From assembly GCF_052425735.1 (NCBI RefSeq), contig NC_135761.1, forward strand, positions 16,554,001-16,618,000: a stretch of 64,000 nt of DNA, given 5' to 3'. Made by a program: the position numbers and the translations under genes. The notes under the pieces were generated by a model, which searched no databases, was not told the origin of the DNA, and worked only from the letters and a program-made list of their open reading frames with translations. Positions 619 through 11,668 of this stretch are shown here, in pieces. The stretch's first letter is position 1, and every line of letters starts with the position of its first letter. Origin of the DNA: Oculina patagonica (Eukaryota).

Positions 619-1970
619 ACAGCTAAGTTACTATAAGCAAATGATAGTTGTTATGTTAACGTTACGTTTCTCCAACTGTCCGATTTTCTTTAATGAACAA
701 TATATTCGAGATTTTCTGGTAGATCGAAATAATTACATTCACAAACGGGAAGTCTCGACAAGACCAGCTAAAAAAGCCTCTGTCGGTCTGAAAATCAAGA
801 CGTTTTCATCATTAATCATTTATGCCATAAAAAAAAAACATTGAAAATGTTAAAATGTAAAAATATATTTCCGTTTAGCTTAAAAAAAAAGCTTAAAAAA
901 CTGTGGTAAAATCTTTTTATCGTCTCGTCGAGTTCCTTGTTCGTAATGAAAAAGTAAACTAGCCTGCACGAAGTAATAAAAAAAATCAATCCATCAGTTC
1001 CATTGCGTGAGAAAAATTGTAAATAAAAAGAGATATTTTGGGCGCGCTGCCGTTTTATCACGAAATGTGGTAATACGTTTTCTTTGAGTTTCGCAAATAA
1101 AGTGGGGCGTGTAATTAGAGATCAATTAAAGTTCAGTGAAAACATGTCACGACTAATTTGCGTCTAAAATGGTGGGGTGCCGGAAATTTATTTATTGAGT
1201 CTTTAAAAATAAATTGAGGCTGTCACAAAGGGAAAATATGGTCCATTTTATTTTCCTCCTACTTCTTTATTAATAAAGTTGGCGATATATATCATTTCCG
1301 TTAAATTCTGTCCTCTTGTCAGCCCAAAGGAAGCAAATATGCAAATAGCAGGTCTCGGCTGAATTTGACACACTACGAAAAACGATTGAATTCATCTTTT
1401 TAACCTTTAAGCAATAAAGAGATTTTTTAGATAAACCAGTAATTGTTTGTAGAATTATTCTGGTAGAAACCCGGTTCAGTGTATTTGTTTTTTATTTGTT
1501 TTATTTTTTTTTTGTATGTAAAATATTGTGATATTGTTAATGTTTTTTTTTTTATTTTTATCGAAACAGAAAATGTATTTTTTAGGAATACTGATAAAAG
1601 CATCGCTCGATCAAGCAGACTAGTCGCGCAGGCGTTAAATTTTAACGTGGTAAGTTTCGCGTCTTATTAAGCACATGGGCATTTTGTCTGCGCATGCGCA
1701 AGATAAATCAGAATTCCAGATCGGCGCCATTTTCAACGTGTGAGCGCGCTTCGGTGGATTTTCAGCTGAGTGATCTACGCACTTGGAAAGCTTTCATGAA
1801 CAGATATGAAAGAGAATAACTTTTTTACATAGTCGTCTAACACTATGGATACTCGTGGTGTTTACCGTGACTTCGGATGAGGATATTTTGACGATCAAAC
1901 TGCGAACAAAACAAGAAAAATCCCCAAAACTGTGAAGTTTGACTTTTGATTTACGAAAGTTCAAGATGTC

Positions 1971-3897
1971 CACAGGTAATTTGCCTGACGAATCACACAT
2001 TTGATTCTTGCGTTTGGTTCGGCACAGTTGTAGAATCATACGAATTATTCTTATGATTCTCCACAATTGTAGAATATGTCATTGTATTTGGAAATAATTT
2101 TGTTGTGTGTAGAATCAAACACTAACGATCTAGTGTATTTCACAGGTCTGTGGAATCAAGCGGGAATCACACGTATTATAACTTATCATTCTCCGCAAAA
2201 GAAGAATACATCGCCGTTGTATTCAGAAAATAATAATTGTGTATCCTGTAAAATAGTTAAAATAAATCCAGTTGTATCCCGAACAATTCGAACCTTCCGC
2301 TATCTCGAATCTTTTCAATTCCCCTCCAGCTCATTTTCCTACTACGTTTAACCATCGATAACTTTATCTTCCGTATACCGGTAATTCCAACCTTCTCGAT
2401 TTCCTCTGAAGGCTTGAATTGTCTGTAGAATCGAGCGGGATGACAAAATCGACCAGCTGCAGTTCTACAGAGAATATATTTCGCCATCAAAACTCAAAAG
2501 ATGTTACCCAAGAACGCATGGCTACAGAAGTGAGGCACTTACCACTTGACTGTTCGGCTACACAGTTGTTTGAGTCTTATAAACTACAGTAGCTACTAAA
2601 CATGCAAACAGTAATTTAAATAAAACGTGGAATACTTCGCGGAATACTGCGTGGAATACTGCCTGATTCTTCAGGTGGTTTGTCAAATGAATATTTATTC
2701 CAATGCTCGATTCGACAGATGAATGTTTGATTCTATTAAAGGAAGACAATCCGCCCAATGCTGCTTGTCGGCTGCGTTTGCGCGATGAAAGTCAGCAGTG
2801 GAAAGCTCCTCTTATTACTAGTCGCACTTTACCCCCATATATCAATAAAATAATCAGAACTCCTTCGCCGGTCCTTAGTCTGTTACCTTCACTGTCTACC
2901 TGCACTTCGTGTCCACAATACTCACACCAGGAAATTGAGCCAGCACTGCAGTAATCTGTAAAATGCGGTAATTTTCATTCGTGCCTCCGAGACCGGGAAA
3001 TATTAAAATGCGATGGCTTCAACTAAATCAGTGACTTATTACACAGGTATGTAGAATCAAACAACAGGCTAAAATATCTATATATTATACAATTATTCTT
3101 CGAGGCAATCCTATGCGGAATCACACGATTTATTTTCTAAGTTTACAACCATGTGTAGAATCGTTTGGATTTGATTCAGCCAAATTGTGTACGCAATATT
3201 ATTCACGCAACTGATAGAAGGGTACCTTTACGCACCTATTAATGCTCAGAGAAAATATCTGATTTGTTTATATGCACGCATGCTCAGTGATGTCATGGAC
3301 AGCATAGATGGTACCACAAGTGTTGCAGGTTTGTAGTCCTTATAACTCACAGGAACTTCACTGTTAAACATCGAAGATTAATGGATGTTCCAGACGAGTA
3401 CACTACTCAGGAGACCCATGCCCACTGCTGCAGCTTATGCGGAAACAGTGGCTCGCTCAAAGCAGGGGTAACTTTTTACATAACATACTTACCTACTTTG
3501 TGACTGATAACTCAGCAAAGAAAGCCACTAAATGATTTTTTTTAATAAACATTTAAGCTTATGCAATAGTCTCCAAATTTTCGGGTTTTGATTCAATAAT
3601 AATGACTATTTGATTCTTCGAATTCACCGTATGATTCTACACGAGATTTCATGTTTTTCGCACATGATTCTTCACATTGTTTCTCGAAAACGTTTGATTC
3701 CTCGCATGAACAAAATAATAGTTCACGTGTGATTCCACAAATGAACATTTGATTCTTCGAATATGCCGCATTCAAGCGCTTGATTTTTCAGCTGATTTCT
3801 GTGAAATCATACGCGTTTGATTCAACAGTGGATATTGAAACAACTGTAGAATCAATTGTGGAATACATCGATTGATTCATCAGGCAAATTACCTGTG
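1971..3897. mobile_element. Non-autonomous CACTA/EnSpm-like element nested in the large transposon
   Basis: 24-bp TIR CACAGGTAATTTGCCTGA(C/T)GAATC at 1971-1994 and 3874-3897; 3-bp TSD GTC (1968-1970, 3898-3900); many subterminal TGTAGAATCA/TGATTC repeats; no long ORF. Confidence 0.8.
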
Positions 3898-5583
3898 GTC
3901 CATAGGAGACGAACAACACCGAAGGATAATCTCAAGATGTTGAGGTTCTATGGGCTTAAATCATTGGTTGTATTGTTAAGACGATCGTCAGATACACGGC
4001 CCTATTCAAGGTAGGAAATTTGGAATTTGATCTGATTTTGTCTCCACTTCAAAGCGAATTTGCATTTTCTTTCCAACCGCCCCCAAGTTTCAAATCACTC
4101 CAGACAACATTGTCTTTTTTTTCTCTTTACAGCCGTGTAGGACTCCAGGCTTAAAAAAATGTTCCAGTGTGCAAGATTTTAATCTTCTTATGAGAGCTTT
4201 TGGTGAAGTTTAATTCGGCAAATTTTAGTAGTCTTTCCAGCCGTGGATCACAGAGGTCTTTGGTCTTGCAGCTCTACAAATCTCCTGTACAAGGTATGTA
4301 GTGATTCACCTTTGCCGTGGTTGCAGTCTCGTTATGTCACACTTTGACTTCAATTTATTTTTTCCTTCGTTTTAGCGGGAATTTTGTCGTTGCATTTTTT
4401 TGCCTTCAAGTGCTTTCTTGAGTAAAAACTGGTGAAAATCTCTTTTATTTGACTCGCCCCCAAGTTCCGCAATACTATCAAGACTTTCTTTGCTTGTTCC
4501 TCTTTCATTATGTCTAGTTTATTTATCCAAGAAAAATGTCTGCACCTTATTTTGTGAAGCAAAACTTCTGGCCTTCGCAGTCGAAGATGGCCACTCTGTG
4601 TACGAAATATGTAGATTTCGAACCGAATGGCGTAAGCTTTATTTCACTGGAATGCCTCTGACTTGCAAACGACTGGAGCTCTCTCGATTTTTATTTTTTA
4701 ACGACTACGGTTGTCATGCTAGGAAAATGTTTGGAGAATGCAGTCTGGTTTATAGCAGAAGAAAATGTTTTGGAACACGCTGTAATGCCCAAGTTTCCTC
4801 TCATTTTAAGGTATGAAGTTTTGGAAAAAAGGTGCTTATGTTTATAATTGGCATGTATGGCAAGATGTGTGTGCCTTCAGCACCTGTTTGTTTGGGTTTC
4901 AGTACTCGCAGGAGAGACGCCTTTTATAAGCAAAACTCCACACAGAGGTCAGAGTGAATTTCTGTTATTCACAATGCTTTTAAAGATATCCAAAAATACA
5001 ATAAGTTCTCAGCAAATACTACAAATAATTATTTAATTATATAAAAGTTTTTTTGCAAATGTTTTGTAGGCATTGGCTTCAAATGGAACCACTTATAAAC
5101 TTTGCCACAAACAAAATAAAAATAGATTGATAAAGGGCCTTTTACATATGTTAATTCATAGGCCATGTTAAATGACTCTTTTTAAGATACAATATAATAA
5201 ATTTTAGTATAAAAACATTAATCTACAGTGCATGAAATGTGCCAGGAAGGAAAGTTATTTCAACAGGCACAAACCAGCCATGGTATCAGTTTGTGTTCTC
5301 TTATTATTCTTGGAGCAAAACATTGCTAAGATAGGAAATATATCTACTAAGTATTTTGCAAAATAAAGTCACAAGAGAGGCTTTGTAATTTGATCTTAAC
5401 AAGGTTGCTGAAAGACTATTTAGCCTTACAATGTATTTTAAACTAAGAAAGAAGCCATACATGTGTCTTTTGGACTGAGAAATATTTTGAGTTTTAAAAG
5501 TTCAGAGCAGGAAAGTCACGCTTGTTATTTCCTTATAATAATGATAATCATGTGAATATGAATAATTTTCTTACAAAACTTAA

Positions 5584-5940
5584 AGGAGCCATATCACGGG
5601 GATTTCGCAGATTGTTGGTCAAAACTGTTCTCACGTTAGGTTAGGCAACTTTAACCATGAAAAACATTATCTTTGAACATCTAAAGAAAGATATAACCTT
5701 AATCTGCATATAAAAAATCAAGCTATGGTTATAAATAACGATTTTTTTTAAGTTGCACGGAAACAATTTGAAAAATTAAGCCTTAATTTTTAAAGCTGCA
5801 ATCTATTTCCATCTGAGCCATCCACAGCCAAAGACGCTCGTTAATAGTATCAGTGATCTAATAGACTATTATTTTTAGGTTTCCTGTGTTACAAATATAA
5901 ATTTTCGCTGTTCAAAAATCTGTTAAAATCCGAAGTTCCT
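5584..5940. mobile_element. TTAA-flanked MITE (Kolobok/piggyBac-like target), nested
   Basis: TTAA|AGGAGCCATATCACGG ... CCGAAGTTCCT|TTAA; a related, 5'-decayed copy lies at ~22960-23248. Confidence 0.6.
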
Positions 5941-5963
5941 TTAAGTGATACAATGTACATGTA

Positions 5964-6194
5964 CCATCTTTATTATTTACTACACATTTGATGATTTCGA
6001 CATTGCTGATCCTAGCAGTATGCAGGACGTGTGTCACATATCAACCTAGTAAATGGCCCAGCTCACAACGAGTCTCTCGTAGCTCAGTTGGTTAGAGCGC
6101 CCAACCAGTATCTGGGAGGCCATGCGTTCGATTCCCGTCGGGGACTCAGATTTTTTTTTTGTCCCACGCTTGTGTCATGTTGAATAATTTCTTC
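5964..6194 (+). mobile_element. tRNA-containing SINE-like repeat
   Basis: A box TAGCTCAGTTGG and B box GTTCGATTCC in a cloverleaf at ~6071-6147 followed by a T-run; TSD ACAATG(T/C)ACATGTA at 5950-5963 and 6195-6208. Confidence 0.75.
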
Positions 6195-6291
6195 ACAATG
6201 CACATGTAGTTTTAAGACTGTTAATTTTGGTTAGCTCCAGGTTTGTGCATGATCTTTGTTCAAGTGGAGGTGAGGTTTGGGTACTTGTACT

Positions 6292-9200
6292 TTACTTAAG
6301 GCCTAAGATAGCTAGGTTTGCACCTTGTAACTGCGTTTGCCAGTCTCTGATAACCATTATTTGAAGGTACCTCACAAAGTTGCTGATATTTCCAGAGACA
6401 CTAGTTGCAACAACACCTCCATGCAAGCCATGCTTGTGACTTTCAAACAGACAAATTTCTTTTTGGTTGAAGCATAATACCATTGTCTTGTCTGGCGGAA
6501 CAATCAATACTGCAGCAAAGTTTGGATGTAGTTGATGGTATTCTACAAGATAGTCCTCAAGGTCTTCAACAGAAAAGAAACCCATGTCTGCAATGATTTC
6601 AAGCTTCTGGAAATTCTGGTCATTTTGTTGAAGGACCTGTCTGACATCTAGGTTTGGTTGATGGGCTGGCATGTTGAATGAGCTGTAAATCTGATTTCCT
6701 TTTATCATTGCGCTAGTGTAAATTGGTATGACAAGGCTTAGATCTTGCAATTGTTTAGGTATTAAAAGAGACCCCTCCAAAAATTTTTTGTCCAGTTAGT
6801 GCAGAAATTACTGTACATGCGTTGCTTCCGCCCATTCTTCCACCCATTGATGACTGGGATACGTACGAGGGCATCAACCACTCTGTCACATCTAAATATT
6901 GCTTCTGTGTCACAGATATGCGAAGAGTATCTGATCTTGGTGTTGAGGCTGGTTGGTCATTGGTACTGCTCTGGCTACCCTGGTTGGCCTTGTGCCACGA
7001 ACAAGGACATTTGGAGCAATTAACATCATTACTGGCTGTGCATAGGCTGTTATCACAGAAATTACATTTAACCTGTGAGTTATTATTAAACCTCTTATGT
7101 CCACGGACAGGATGGTGACATTTTCTACAATGTGGTGGTGCCTTACTTGGAGAAGGTGTTCTGGTGCTAGGAATTGATCCTTGGCCAAGATCAGAACTGC
7201 TAAATGGTTGGGAAGCTGGATTGAGATTAGCAAGGTCGTTGTTAAGCTGCTGTATTATGTTATCATACTCCTCCCTCTCCATTTCCCTTAAACAAGTAAT
7301 TTCATTAGAATGATCATCATCTGCTGCCACTGGTGTTGTTTGGTTAGTGTGATCATTGCCAGACTCTGGTACGCCATGGGTGGTGGATGCAGGATGTAAA
7401 ATGGCTTGTTTTGCAATTTCACCCAGTTCATTTACTTTCTGTTTCAGGAAATCCTTACATAATGGGCATGACGTTGATCCAGCAAGACATCTGTCATGAA
7501 AAGAATGACAGCAACCATGCAAGATTGTCCAATTTTCCTCCTGGGTGGACATGTTACATTCAGGTAAGTCACATTTTTTTGTTGGATCTGGCTTGATGTC
7601 AGCATGATATCCTAGTGGCAAAACATTAGTTTTCATACTGCTGTTGGGGGCCATTGTTGGTAGTGTCACATGGGTTGGAGCACTGGTGCTGCTTCTGCTT
7701 TGTGAAGAAAACCGACTTTGTCCAGGACCCTGAGAGATTTTTCTGAACATTGTGGACAGTAATTGAGCACACTTGACTTTAAGAAACTGCAGCTGATTGT
7801 GCGAAAAAGAAAACTGTTTTGGTGCAGTAAAAAATGATCTAAAGTGGGACTGTTTTTCTTTTGACTGGAAAATGGATTTTGCTTTCTTTCTAAGGTCATC
7901 AGGCGTGTCATAGTCTTTTGTTTGTGACCGAAGTATGCTATGCGTGTTTTCAACAGGATATTCATCAAAGATTGTTATGTAATTCTTGAGCAGGTTATAC
8001 AATTGTGGTGCATACTTTCCCCAGTGAGAGCACATGTTGATCCAAACGAGCGGAGCTTTGTTGTAGTGCCTCCGGCTTAAGCAGGTGAACATAATCCAAA
8101 TTCTAATCATGGCTCTGAAGTACTCAGAGAACTTGTTGAGTTTAAAGGAAATACTGTATATTGACAATACCAAAGGTATATAATTGTCTAGCAAATTAAA
8201 AAGTGTCCCATACTCCACATCTTTGAACCTAGAGAACTTTGTTATCACCGTTCCTCGTATGAGAGTCCAACCTCCATACACAATTTCCAAAATCAGACTT
8301 ACTCTCCAGGGTTTTGGTTTGTCTGCTAATTTGCTCCTAGGAAAAATTGTTTCATAAACTGTTTTGAAAAATGGGTGATAGCAATTAACAATGTGTTCCC
8401 TGCTGTTTAAGGATATGTGAAGTGGCCCAATAGTTGGCACGATAGACAAGATGGATGGCTGTGATGTTGTATTCGTGGGCAAGCTGTCTTCAGTTGGATT
8501 GTTAACCGTACCAGTGGTCAATGGAAATGAGTAGGAGCAGTGATCAGCCAAAGTATTGTCATGTTCCTGAGGAGCATCAGTCAACCCAGGATGACAGCCA
8601 ATGAACTTCTGAAATGTTTCATATGCATTTTGCCTGCAATAGAATTGGCAAGGCCAATCCCCTGGCTGAAAAACAATAAACTTCCTCATATAAGCAGCCA
8701 AGCCAGTGTTCATTACAACATCATATGCAATATCAAAGTCCTCCTTTGACTTCAGTCTGAGCTCTATGAAATCCAACAAATGTAAATCATCCATTTTCCG
8801 CATTGTTCTAACATTATCATTGTCACAAATACTGATGTACATTGATCCTGTGTCTCTCAAGTTCGGGATTAAAAAATGCTTCGGTAAGCCAGTCTGGCAT
8901 CACAGACGCATAACTAGAACTGATATCATGCATGCATGACGCAGATGTAATTAATTGTTCGCAGGATTCAATGTCAATGCCATTTTGGTCATGAACACAA
9001 TTAGCTTGATCGACGGTTACTGCTGGGATATCCTTAAAGGCTTTCACAACGATTGTGCACATTCTCTTTGCCTCAGAAGACTCGTCGTTTTGTGGCCTTT
9101 TCTTTGTGTGCACCGATGTGTAGTCATCAATGATAAGTACAAGGAGCCACTTGAATTCTATTGCTTGTTTTACAAAATCCTCAAATGATTGGGAGTGACA

Positions 9201-11062
9201 TTCAGACATTGTGTTTAAGATATTATTTACAGTTCTTCTTGCACAGCAGTGCCCCATAATGTGTTGTGTTTCAATACCTTCTTGATTTATTTGATTGCTT
9301 CTGAGGTACAGTGCATGGTCTATTTGCAGAAGATTACATGTTTGGCTCAGACAGTAGCATAAGTTGTAAATGAATGAAACCACCCTCTTTTTGTTCAGAC
9401 AAACACGATCTGCTGAGTGCCTAGAACTTGTTATTGACTCCAGAATAGTGTCAAACAACTTTGTTGCACCAGCAGAAATACAAAACTCCCTAAAACTGTC
9501 TGGATCATACACAGTTTCTTTCTTGTTTGTTACCATCTCAGAGTAAATTCTCCTTTTGACCATCTCAATTTCCTTTTTCATGTCACACCCTGTAGTGGAT
9601 TGGTATAACATTTACAAAAAACACAAAGATTGTAAAAATATTTAGCCATATTTTTCTTGCAAAATACAAGAATTTGATAAAGCATCCGACAGAATACCCT
9701 GTAGCTGCTTGCTTAATAATGACTGTTTATTTTTTGTAAGAAGGGCAAGGCTGTGTTACAGGTATTCATGTTGTACGTGTGGCTCACAGATTGTTATGTG
9801 TTAGTTAAACCGAAAATATTTTATCAAAAAATAAGCTGAATAAATAAACGAAATTGAAAAATGTACTCGAGTGCTTATCTACACCTGAAATAGTTAGGGG
9901 CAAAACCATTTGACTTTGGAGAGGGGGGGGGGGGGGGGTGGTTGTTTGACATCAAAAGACAAACTTTCCTCCAAGCAAAGAAATAATGTACATCTTTTTA
10001 ACGAAGACAAAATATATCAGCCTTGTGTCTTTTTCATCAGTGGAAAAACGGAGAAGAGAATCTTTCAAATCAGAAATCTTCCAACCCTCCCCCCTTGGTG
10101 GTGAGGCACATTATTATTGCAAGTTTAGAGTAGGGAAAGAAACATCCATTTATTCTGGTCCAAAGCCGGCTGAGATGTAATGAGCCTGGTATCTCATAAA
10201 ACACTAGATTTGTATAAAGTGTTGTCTACTGCGTTTACACAGGTGTGGAGGGCAGGGGAAAAAGTGAATTGGATTTAAATGGCTTGCGACCGGTTATTCT
10301 TCATTGAAGTTCCTTCTAAAGTGTAAACGTATTTTTATTCTGCCGAGTAAATTGTAGCTTTTAGGTGTGATACTGTTTTTTTTTCAGTTATGCAGAGAAT
10401 GCTGTCTATACAATACAATGTAACTTATTCTTCCATTAAAAAGTCGAATGGTAGGAACCAAAAGCAAATAAATTAAATTACTTTCTGCTAAAATCTTCAA
10501 TTTTTCCTCCATTTCTAAAAACGTTTCCTTTGGTATAACTACCATTTCTTCTGTTCTACCTGTACATGAACTATCACTGGCTGACTTTTCTGTTCCTAAA
10601 TCTTTCTGTTTCTTTATTCTTCCTCTCTGATTGCGATTCATGCCAACAAACTTTCAACAAAAAAGTAAACTTTTGTCAAATTTTAAAGTTATTTATTGAA
10701 GCCTTTTTACAAAACGTATTTAAGTTCACAGGGAATGAAGCACACTGAATGTTCAATAATGTCTCGATATTATTACTAACGTGATGGAATCGTTTTCCAG
10801 TGCGTCGATGTTCCTGCACAGCTCGTCTGCATCCTTCACATATTACACCCGCGTTCGTACCATCTGTCAAAACTACACCAAAACAAAACTCCAACTCTTT
10901 CACATAGGCTTCTACCTTCTGAAATGGCCTCGATTGGGATTTCTTCCTGCACACCACACAACCATTTTCGGACTTCCCTGCACTATTACACAATTCACAA
11001 ACCAATAAAAGAACAGCAACAATTTGAAGGCGCCATCGAAAAGTTTTCGCGAAGATCGCCAT
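6292..11062 (-). CDS. Putative transposase: C4 Zn finger + DDE-like core + RING-H2 + Cys/His cluster + papain-like peptidase; two +1 frameshifts
   Basis: Phase-compatible exons 11062-10781 (CAC|gttagt), 10650-10482 (aag|...GAAA|gtaatt) and 9589-6292 (tacag|GG). ORFs 8823-9611, 6755-8860 and 6292-6780 join if one base is removed at 8827-8829 and one at 6784-6789, giving ~1248 aa. Motifs: CVVC..CEGC; IIDDY, PGDWP, IGPLH, DEYPVENTH; CDLPEC..CCHSFHDRC..CPLC; GSNACTVI..LFESH. Confidence 0.75.
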
Positions 11063-11668
11063 TTTTAATTCTTCGGCTATTTGAATTTGGCGGGAAAAAA
11101 GGACGCGTACGCGCGTCGCAGGCGCGTTTCAGCGGATTCCTTCATGAGAAGATCCTAAGCTACGCATGCGCAGACAAAATGCCCCTCTGCTGTCTTATTA
11201 AAAATATCAAACTGGCAAAAGGCCAACCATTAAGACTCAAACGGAGTTTATATTCAGTGTGCTGTAGAAACAACTTGTGAGTCCACAAACCGTCAGAAGC
11301 GAAGTGTTACCAGCTTGATTTAGGCTCAAGTTTCGTTTTACCATGTAGCGACCATAACCATGCAAAAAAGAATAACCCTTCGAAATACCCAGTTGATAAA
11401 TTAGCTCCTTGTCGTAATTTAAATATCACAGGCCTTAAATTCAACCAAAAATGATTGTTACCGCGAATTATTGTTACCCCCAATAATTAACTTAAAAACT
11501 CCTTTAAAACAAAGCGATTTAAGCATGGATGGCATAATTTTTTTTAAAAAAAGATATTAAACGGATGCTCGGAACTTATTCAGTTGTGAATTGCTTACTA
11601 GACGATTTTACTTTAGCTGTAAATAAGAAAGATGGCTGACAAATATAAAATGTTTGAAACCAGCTTAC

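Follow-up and report, generated by a model that had tools for sequence, protein, structure and literature searches.

Academ transposons are probably the closest described relatives of the element reported here, and published accounts of AcademH and AcademX provide the terms of comparison. According to PMC10045372, which cites Kojima 2020, AcademH elements generate target-site duplications (TSDs) of 9-10 bp, and AcademX elements generate TSDs of 3-4 bp and encode an XPG nuclease; the helicase of AcademH, as given in PMC10799480, carries the Pfam domains DEAD and Helicase_C. Academ elements are reported to be most abundant in Pucciniomycotina (PMC5751038) and to have expanded in bivalves (PMC10294476). 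A second body of work concerns the viral-tegument-like deubiquitinases (VTDs), whose hallmark is a catalytic Cys with an acidic-x-His motif and which are known from Helentron transposons; their describers had already remarked that cnidarian VTDs occur fused to transposon-associated domains (PMC9741609). Here we describe a DNA transposon of the coral Oculina patagonica, found in a stretch of 64,000 nt of NC_135761.1 (16,554,001-16,618,000, forward strand), which is called the window hereafter and whose numbering is used throughout. The element spans positions 1670-11191, has the ends AGCA...TGCT and probably represents a lineage of transposons with terminal inverted repeats (TIRs) that is related to Academ, bears RING and deubiquitinase domains, lacks both helicase and XPG nuclease, and is set apart from Academ by comparison with the published descriptions.

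The limits of the element and the state of its target site before insertion are visible in the following features.

1661-1669: left copy of the 9-bp TSD, GTCTTATTA, with the same letters as 11192-11200
1670-1698, plus strand: TIR at the 3′ end relative to the transposase gene, holding the core GGCATTTTGTCTGCGCATG and the palindrome GCGCATGCGC
11163-11191, minus strand: TIR at the 5′ end relative to the transposase gene, pairing with 1670-1698
11192-11200: right copy of the 9-bp TSD, GTCTTATTA, which abuts the inverted repeat directly
20279-20287: empty paralogous target site, GTCTAATTA, free of any footprint, in a paralogous stretch (20180-20400) that is unbroken

The TIRs pair over 29 nt with 93% complementarity, or at 28 of 31 positions when lengthened to 31 nt, the length given in the original prediction, and the window contains their 19-nt core GGCATTTTGTCTGCGCATG exactly twice, where 0.01 occurrences would be expected by chance. 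The flanks of the insertion align with a paralogue inside the window at 93-95% identity (879-1669 with 19501-20287, and 11517-12214 with 20654-21347) and, since the site of that paralogue is empty, the insertion is later than the local duplication. The original prediction, made from the letters of the window, had claimed a DNA transposon with TIRs, a perfect 9-bp TSD, an uninterrupted paralogous site and, with them, boundaries and a post-duplication timing that can be seen directly; the features listed above bear it out on each of these points. An empty site, as expected for a cut-and-paste DDE transposon, is thus present at 20279-20287, and contigs of a DNA sequencing run (X1) also join the left flank straight to 11192. 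The left flank of these contigs differs by one mismatch from that of the window and by two from the paralogue in the window, so that they are compatible with an unoccupied allele or orthologue, a paralogue being the alternative.

Six further elements (L001-L006) were retrieved from four other coral assemblies in ENA through an exact-protein look-up of relatives; for the Exaiptasia and Oculina paralogues P0020 and P0084 this look-up yielded no locus. The identical 19-nt core stands at both ends of all six, which makes seven copies with that of the window. Perfect 9-bp TSDs flank L001 and L003-L006 (CCGATATTA, CGAAGCACC, CGCATGACC, CCTAAGAGT and CGCCGGCGG), all of them differing from each other and from the window's, and the TSD of L002 has decayed; a duplication of fixed length, distinct at every locus, is therefore found in six of the seven copies. 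Other copies with different 9-bp TSDs, proposed as a check of the original prediction, accordingly exist. A comparison of the six TSDs makes no target-site consensus evident. Intact elements, such as L001 at 8495-15137 and L004 at 4358-11177, measure 6.3-6.9 kb, in keeping with the length of about 7 kb that had been predicted for the window element once its nested repeats are taken away. Transposition has been recent, because two copies at different loci of one assembly, L003 and L004, are 99.2% identical (99.15% over 6.8 kb); moreover, one protein cluster at 90% identity has 38 members. When contigs of public sequencing runs were aligned to window positions 6200-11350, contigs at least 99% identical to the element but with a right flank unlike the window's were found in runs labelled as two other organisms. 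Altogether, this is a real and recently mobile family of cut-and-paste DNA transposons. The intact copies at 99% identity, together with the transcripts described below, suggest a live element in corals, which bears on the stability of coral genomes and could in the future provide a genetic tool for cnidarians.

Some further observations concern these copies. In L003, which is otherwise 99% identical to L004, an open reading frame (ORF) of a non-LTR retrotransposon (Exo_endo_phos and RVT_1) occupies 1906-5025, between the zinc-finger and the transposase ORFs. No subterminal repeat arrays that might serve as extra binding sites were found in the intact copy L004. Runs X12, X17, X18 and X1 contain copies with at least 99% identity to the element of the window, some of them differently flanked, under at least three organism labels and in a coral metagenome; these copies could reflect closely related species, mislabelling or contamination, or a recent horizontal spread.

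The coding content of the element consists of a long transposase gene and a small upstream ORF, both on the minus strand; the positions of motifs and domains are approximate.

10676-11062, minus strand: upstream ORF of 128 aa with a CxxC...CxxC zinc module, ZAD/FAM60A-like
6292-9611, minus strand: transposase gene of about 1,090 aa, in three frames (9611-8823, 8860-6755 and 6780-6292)
near 8827 and near 6784: 1-bp frameshifts of the window copy
near 9125: candidate for the first catalytic D(D)
near 8658: candidate for the second D
near 8410-8435: motif GPLHISLN
near 7953: candidate for the catalytic E
about 7455-7572: RING-H2
about 6295-6945: putative VTD deubiquitinase

The best protein match of the window ORFs is a hypothetical protein of Oculina patagonica (P0001, 100% identity), and the transposase is collinear, without introns, with an intact relative of 1,088 aa (P0002), to which it is 74% identical. 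At both frameshift sites, the contigs of three RNA-labelled runs, and one or more contigs of the DNA run, lack one letter that the window has; since uninterrupted versions thus exist, the frame breaks would be either private to the window copy or errors of assembly. The zinc-finger ORF has two Pfam matches, both below threshold (FAM60A, E 8e-6; zf-AD, E 7e-4), and leads of the ZAD/RAG1-N-terminal type in an atlas search. ORFs stand at the matching position in L003 and L004, and the one in L004, a member of a distant subfamily, is 45% identical to that of the window. It could encode a small protein of its own or be a 5′ exon that has escaped annotation; as an N-terminal exon of the transposase it figures in no gene model among 406 proteins, and no splice joint was found in the run contigs. 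Between subfamilies, tblastx comparison reveals these two ORFs as the only conserved coding sequence, and for this reason the element is taken to encode neither a helicase nor an XPG nuclease. Helicase Pfam matches were found inside none of the copies L001-L006, and XPG matches in none of the transposase relatives scanned.

An alignment of 31 full-length relatives (A1, in the residue numbering of P0002) and an AlphaFold model of P0002 (predicted local distance difference test, pLDDT, 78.8; predicted template modelling score, pTM, 0.63) allow a putative catalytic core to be delineated. Invariant in the alignment are D152 and D153 (LIIDDYT), D308 (PGDWP), H387, N391 and E394 (GPLHISLNSRE), and E543 and H546 (PVENTHS). 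In the model, strand 1 of a mixed sheet bears D152/D153, and a strand ends at D308; an all-helical insertion of about 150 residues then separates the last strand from the helix that bears E543. This arrangement, which is also the topology of hAT, RAG/Transib and P transposases, is that expected of an RNase-H-type DDE core, in which D152/D153, D308 and E543 would form the conserved acidic triad and would have catalytic roles. C-terminal to the core, the eight C3H2C3 ligands of a RING-H2 finger (C669, C674, C689, H691, H694, C697, C704 and C707) are invariant as well, with an unusual spacing, C-x4-C, in the first pair; RING matches in Pfam stay below threshold and reach up to 14 of 44 members for any single RING family. 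The C-terminal 200 residues or so match VTDs (Foldseek E 2.5e-4), with VIA Z scores of 18.1 for 8add, 16.0 for 8adc and 15.6 for the cytomegalovirus protease M48 (2j7q), and the signature GSNAC914T plus [D/E]1039-S-H1041 is conserved in 26-27 of the 31 sequences, the acidic residue being Glu in about half of the members. By its predicted fold and by the Cys and acidic-x-His signature, the domain would be a deubiquitinase of the VTD class. The likeness in fold (Z 15-18) and signature extends over 8add, 8adc, 8adb and the herpesvirus M48 protease 2j7q; whereas the VTDs of Helentrons are joined to a Helitron Rep/helicase, that of the coral element is part of a TIR transposon's DDE transposase.

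As regards the kinship of the core, neither the three ORF pieces of the window nor more than 60 relatives match any Pfam transposase family, and only the sub-threshold RING matches and a single one to DUF6589 appear. This agrees with the original prediction, in which the protein was held not to be of the MULE (Mutator-like element), hAT, P, Merlin or Tc1 type. Three independent lines nevertheless converge on DUF6589. In the ESM Atlas, residues 1-695 match a cluster partly annotated as DUF6589 with a TM score of 0.80 (by match) and a root-mean-square deviation of 3.3 over 608 residues; a search by language-model features returns DUF6589 clusters at 0.91, with 205-212 of 256 features in common; and Foldseek against the AlphaFold Database (AFDB) finds DUF6589 proteins at E 1e-10. 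The search was also run reciprocally, from a model (pLDDT 78.8) of a true DUF6589 protein of the same coral (P0364; Pfam E 1e-41), which likewise leads to the glomeromycete cluster that ranks first among the structural neighbours of the transposase family, and to two of the same AFDB entries. The transposase core would therefore belong to the DUF6589 fold family, although sequence profiles barely connect the two. The claim that no recognised family accounts for the element thus stands in part, since the family is unnamed but, with a core of the DUF6589 fold, not isolated; similarly, the protein, presented as uncharacterised, has an unnamed core without a Pfam transposase domain, but its C-terminal domain falls in a known class of deubiquitinases. 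The family counts 3,349 representative clusters at E<=1e-3, and its hosts comprise scleractinians, Exaiptasia, octocorals, the sponge Oscarella, the hemichordate Ptychodera, the amphioxus Branchiostoma, the protist Pompholyxophrys and Glomeromycota. A mechanism, with TIRs, a 9-bp TSD and recent mobility, is in this way attached to a large uncharacterised family, which at 50% identity comprises more than 3,000 clusters and whose proteins are now labelled “hypothetical” or “RING-type domain-containing” in corals, anemones, sponges, hemichordates, amphioxus and mycorrhizal fungi, and this should improve the annotation of both transposons and genes in these genomes.

The step from DUF6589 to Academ relies on a second kind of element. 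A fragment of a DEAD/ResIII helicase lies in the flank of L002, and the extended locus (L007, 10001-16043) contains a Helicase_C ORF and convergent DUF6589 ORFs. Furthermore, four near-identical copies (about 99%) in one assembly (L008-L011) combine a multi-exon DUF6589 gene with a convergent gene of DEAD/ResIII and Helicase_C. Comparison of these copies delimits a unit of about 10.5 kb with the short TIRs TAGACTT...AAGTCTA, flanked by the 9-bp TSDs CGTTAATAA in L009 (5304-15788) and GACAGCATC in L011 (5260-15799). DUF6589 matches also occur in Pucciniomycotina and in bivalves, the taxa rich in Academ. Because the pairing with a helicase, the 9-bp TSDs and the taxon distribution all agree with published AcademH, Pfam DUF6589 very probably corresponds to the AcademH-type transposase, an equation made through the published description of Academ and not through Academ sequences, and one that would give this domain a function and should likewise be of use for annotation. 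A search of the literature on DUF6589 (PF20231) found nothing relevant to transposons. As a side observation, repeats with a period of about 62-68 bp are arrayed in tandem within the right flank common to two segmentally duplicated loci of this kind (L009, 19347-20646; L010, 19355-20646).

Seen against AcademH, the window element shows TIRs and 9-bp TSDs, the latter within the published range of 9-10 bp (PMC10045372), in line with the 9-bp TSDs that the original prediction ascribed to AcademH, and observed in six copies. It also shows a large DDE transposase whose predicted fold is the same, with an N-terminal helical domain and a helical insertion domain, a collinear order of motifs (GD[W/Y] ... 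P..[L/F]H ... E), and overlapping hosts, namely cnidarians, hemichordates, amphioxus and fungi. Unlike AcademH, it has no superfamily-II helicase gene and no XPG nuclease, and carries instead RING-H2 and a putative VTD on the transposase, as well as a small upstream zinc-finger ORF. AcademX is more distant, with TSDs of 3-4 bp against 9 bp here and with the XPG nuclease for which Pfam gives no match in this family. Given that the core has the DUF6589 fold and that DUF6589 would be the AcademH-type transposase, we read the element as a very divergent, helicase-less relative of Academ rather than as a transposon without kin.

Several points weigh against this reading. The DUF6589 match in Pfam concerns one of 44 family members and lies below threshold. 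Comparison of the 44 members with 19 DUF6589 proteins by hhalign reaches a probability of 29-40% (E 3e-4 to 6e-4), and does so in the N-terminal helical domain only, which is why membership of Academ by sequence is not claimed, even though DUF6589, as a proxy for the Academ transposase, is close in fold, in features and in shared neighbours. The identification of DUF6589 with the Academ transposase itself rests on architecture, TSD length and taxon distribution, not on Repbase sequences. The acidic triad was assigned by conservation and position in the secondary structure, not by residue-level superposition. The termini are AGCAG... in this family and TAGACTT... in the elements with DUF6589 and helicase. 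Finally, the window copy, with its two frameshifts, is unable to make a full-length transposase.

The rival that survives best is that of a separate new superfamily of eukaryotic DDE transposons, whose likeness to DUF6589 and Academ would be that of the ancient fold common to DDE transposases with an insertion domain (hAT, P and Transib/RAG) and whose 9-bp TSD would be a coincidence. It is favoured by the absence of a Pfam transposase match, by the different termini, by accessory domains that are RING and VTD here and helicase or XPG in Academ, and by a sequence similarity below significance in comparisons of hidden Markov models: over the catalytic core, hhalign with two DUF6589 alignments gives no significant match, profile-profile comparison of A1 and A3 with a single DUF6589 ORF and with A2 and A4 gave nothing significant there, and the pairing of PGDW...P.IGPLH in the transposase family with GGDY...IP..FH in DUF6589, although collinear, is non-significant too. 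Against it, however, the fold match to DUF6589 attains TM 0.80 over about 600 residues, compared with TM 0.2-0.5 for models of hAT, RAG, P, IS66 and Mutator; the two models have reciprocal common neighbours and the language-model features stand at 0.91; both lineages make 9-bp TSDs; and the match of the N-terminal domain is collinear, at E of about 3e-4. We consider this separate origin rather unlikely.

A lineage within the group of hAT, P and Transib-RAG, with a lengthened TSD, is improbable. Among solved structures, it is true, the best matches to the core (residues of about 80-585) come from this group, with VIA Z scores of 11.5 for Hermes, 10.2 for RAG1, 9.4 for the P element and 8.2 for Transib, beside 8.3 for ISCth4; the four of the group all share an RNase-H-like DDE core with a large alpha-helical insertion before the catalytic Glu, and RAG1 has a RING finger too, N-terminal there and C-terminal here. 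Nevertheless, Z values of 8-11.5 for a largely helical domain of 500 residues may reflect a common arrangement alone, and therefore show a working likeness and not membership of a family. The TSD has 9 bp and not the 8 of hAT, the 7-8 of P or the 5 of Transib; no Pfam domains are held in common, neither the hAT dimerisation, THAP, Tnp_P or RAG domains nor a GTP-binding insertion being detected; and the match to DUF6589 is much closer. For hAT in particular, which was tried and rejected as a candidate, no Dimer_Tnp_hAT match was found and the likeness to Hermes is at the level of fold only.

Still less probable is a divergent member of the MULEs, the classical superfamily with a 9-bp TSD. With MULE/MuDR the element shares the length of the TSD and a large DDE transposase that contains zinc fingers, and the fold match to ISCth4, of the IS256 family, points the same way, as that family is related to MuDR (PMC10045372). 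But more than 60 members were scanned without any match to the MULE, Transposase_mut, DBD_Tnp_Mut or SWIM domains of Pfam, a eukaryotic Mutator cluster gives only TM 0.37-0.39 against the DUF6589-type model, a poorer fold match, and Hermes, RAG1 and the P element all score above the IS256-type fold. In addition, GPLH stands at the place where C/DxxH would be expected, a motif that is typical of MuDR, hAT, P and Kolobok (PMC10045372).

That the window copy, which alone is concerned here, represents a dead relic, or else a host gene that has been domesticated, outside any currently mobile family is hardly credible, in spite of its two frameshifts, its nested miniature inverted-repeat transposable element and other repeats and its annotation as the hypothetical host protein P0001, seeing that its TIRs and TSD are intact, that contigs of other runs, at other loci and at least 99% identical, lack the extra base at both frameshifts, and that in related subfamilies copies identical at 99% are flanked by different TSDs.

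Two more candidates were rejected. Merlin elements have a small IS1016-like transposase and TSDs of 8-9 bp, a length that would fit, but the protein here has about 1,090 aa and no Pfam match of the IS1595/IS1016 type. For KDZ/Zisupton, the sole hint was an AFDB protein annotated “CxC3”, aligned to residues 460-1087 with TM 0.17-0.20, probably through the C-terminal part.

Returning to the lineage that we relate to Academ, its mechanism could be pictured as follows. The transposase of about 1,090 aa, probably as a multimer, would bind the TIRs of 29-31 bp (AGCAG..., with their invariant core), cleave both ends of the element, excise it and insert it at cuts staggered by 9 bp; the structural neighbours (hAT, RAG/Transib and P) make a hairpin intermediate possible. 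The RING-H2 finger, a Cys/His-rich linker and the VTD, all C-terminal to the core, would act on ubiquitin marks, whose target could be the transposase itself or host factors of chromatin or repair at the break of the donor or target site. The transposase might in this way stabilise itself against K48-linked degradation, an escape that has been proposed for the VTDs of Helentrons and herpesviruses (PMC9741609). The pairing of a RING with a VTD suggests an enzyme that manipulates ubiquitin. A DDE transposase fused to a RING and a deubiquitinase is unusual, and calls to mind the RING of RAG1 on the one hand and the deubiquitinases of Helentrons and of herpesviruses on the other; a role of ubiquitin in transposition becomes directly testable.

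The element also gives rise to RNA from the strand opposite to the transposase, as indicated by the following exons.

about 4135-4293, plus strand: antisense upstream exon; contigs run into 4265-4291 (plus strand), followed by AAG/GTATGT
7448-7563, plus strand: antisense internal exon, with acceptor TTTCAG/G (7447/7448) and donor CAG/GTAAGT
8412-9853, plus strand: antisense last exon, with acceptor TTTAAG/GA, AATAAA at 9840-9845 and contig ends at 9853-9854

The contigs of greatest abundance in three RNA-labelled runs connect 7446-7561 with 8410-9854 and are covered 4-14 times as deeply as the remainder of the element; allowing a shift of 2 nt, the junction reads CAG/GTAAGT ... TTTAAG/GA on the plus strand, antisense to the transposase. 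The two introns accordingly have the ends GTATGT...TTTCAG and GTAAGT...TTTAAG. An abundant, spliced and apparently polyadenylated antisense transcript is thus present; its strand was read from the splice and poly(A) signals, because the contigs are strandless and RNA libraries can contain DNA. The spliced product holds no long ORF. The donor and the acceptor of the second intron fall within the codons of the invariant CDLPEC, at the start of the RING (7555-7572), and HISLNSRE (8405-8428), and both of these internal splice sites are kept in all three subfamilies compared, a preservation that may follow simply from the constraint on the protein. A palindrome, GCGCATGCGC, is present in both TIRs (1686-1698 and 11163-11175), with TGCGCATGC in its place in other subfamilies. 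It resembles a promoter element of the NRF-1 type, and at each end of the element it could act as a promoter that faces outward or inward; that the left TIR drives the antisense RNA is a speculation.

A fuller proposal can be put forward only tentatively: that of an unclassified lineage at superfamily level, sister to Academ, with a RING-H2 “writer-like” domain and a VTD “eraser” of its own, currently active in reef-building corals, and itself encoding an antisense RNA, spliced and polyadenylated, that has its splice sites within codons of the two most conserved transposase motifs. As a whole it is possible but doubtful.

The surroundings of the element and the material nested within it comprise the following features.

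11576-12034, minus strand: PAN-domain exon
13055-13798, plus strand: ORF of a rhodopsin-type G-protein-coupled receptor, between the paralogues
15861-16676, minus strand: ALK/LTK glycine-rich exon of the neighbouring paralogue
1971-3897: nested CACTA-like non-autonomous element of 1,927 bp, with the ends CACAG...CTGTG and TIRs of 26 nt
1968-1970 and 3898-3900: 3-bp TSD, GTC, of the nested CACTA-like element
3904-4642: the transposon's own 3′ non-coding region, homologous to L001 and L006
4643-6290: internal segment specific to the window, with pieces of other dispersed repeats

The region of the PAN exon is duplicated locally (879-1669 plus 11192-12214 against 19501-21347), with the transposon in one paralogue only, and the duplicated host gene carries PAN and ALK/LTK glycine-rich domains. 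A position of the transposon in the intron after the PAN exon of this coral gene is compatible with these data; the original prediction had placed it in intron 1 of a PAN-EGF-GlyR gene.

As to the three nested repeats that had been proposed, one is a clean insertion, the CACTA-like element, which is not present at the homologous point of L001, L006 and L004, and dispersed repeats do occur in 4643-6290; the stretch 9592-10477, however, is not a private insertion, since a copy from a different run, at a different locus, has it too. Between the zinc-finger and the transposase ORFs, a run of about 20 G at 9915-9940 is a likely trouble spot for sequencing or assembly.

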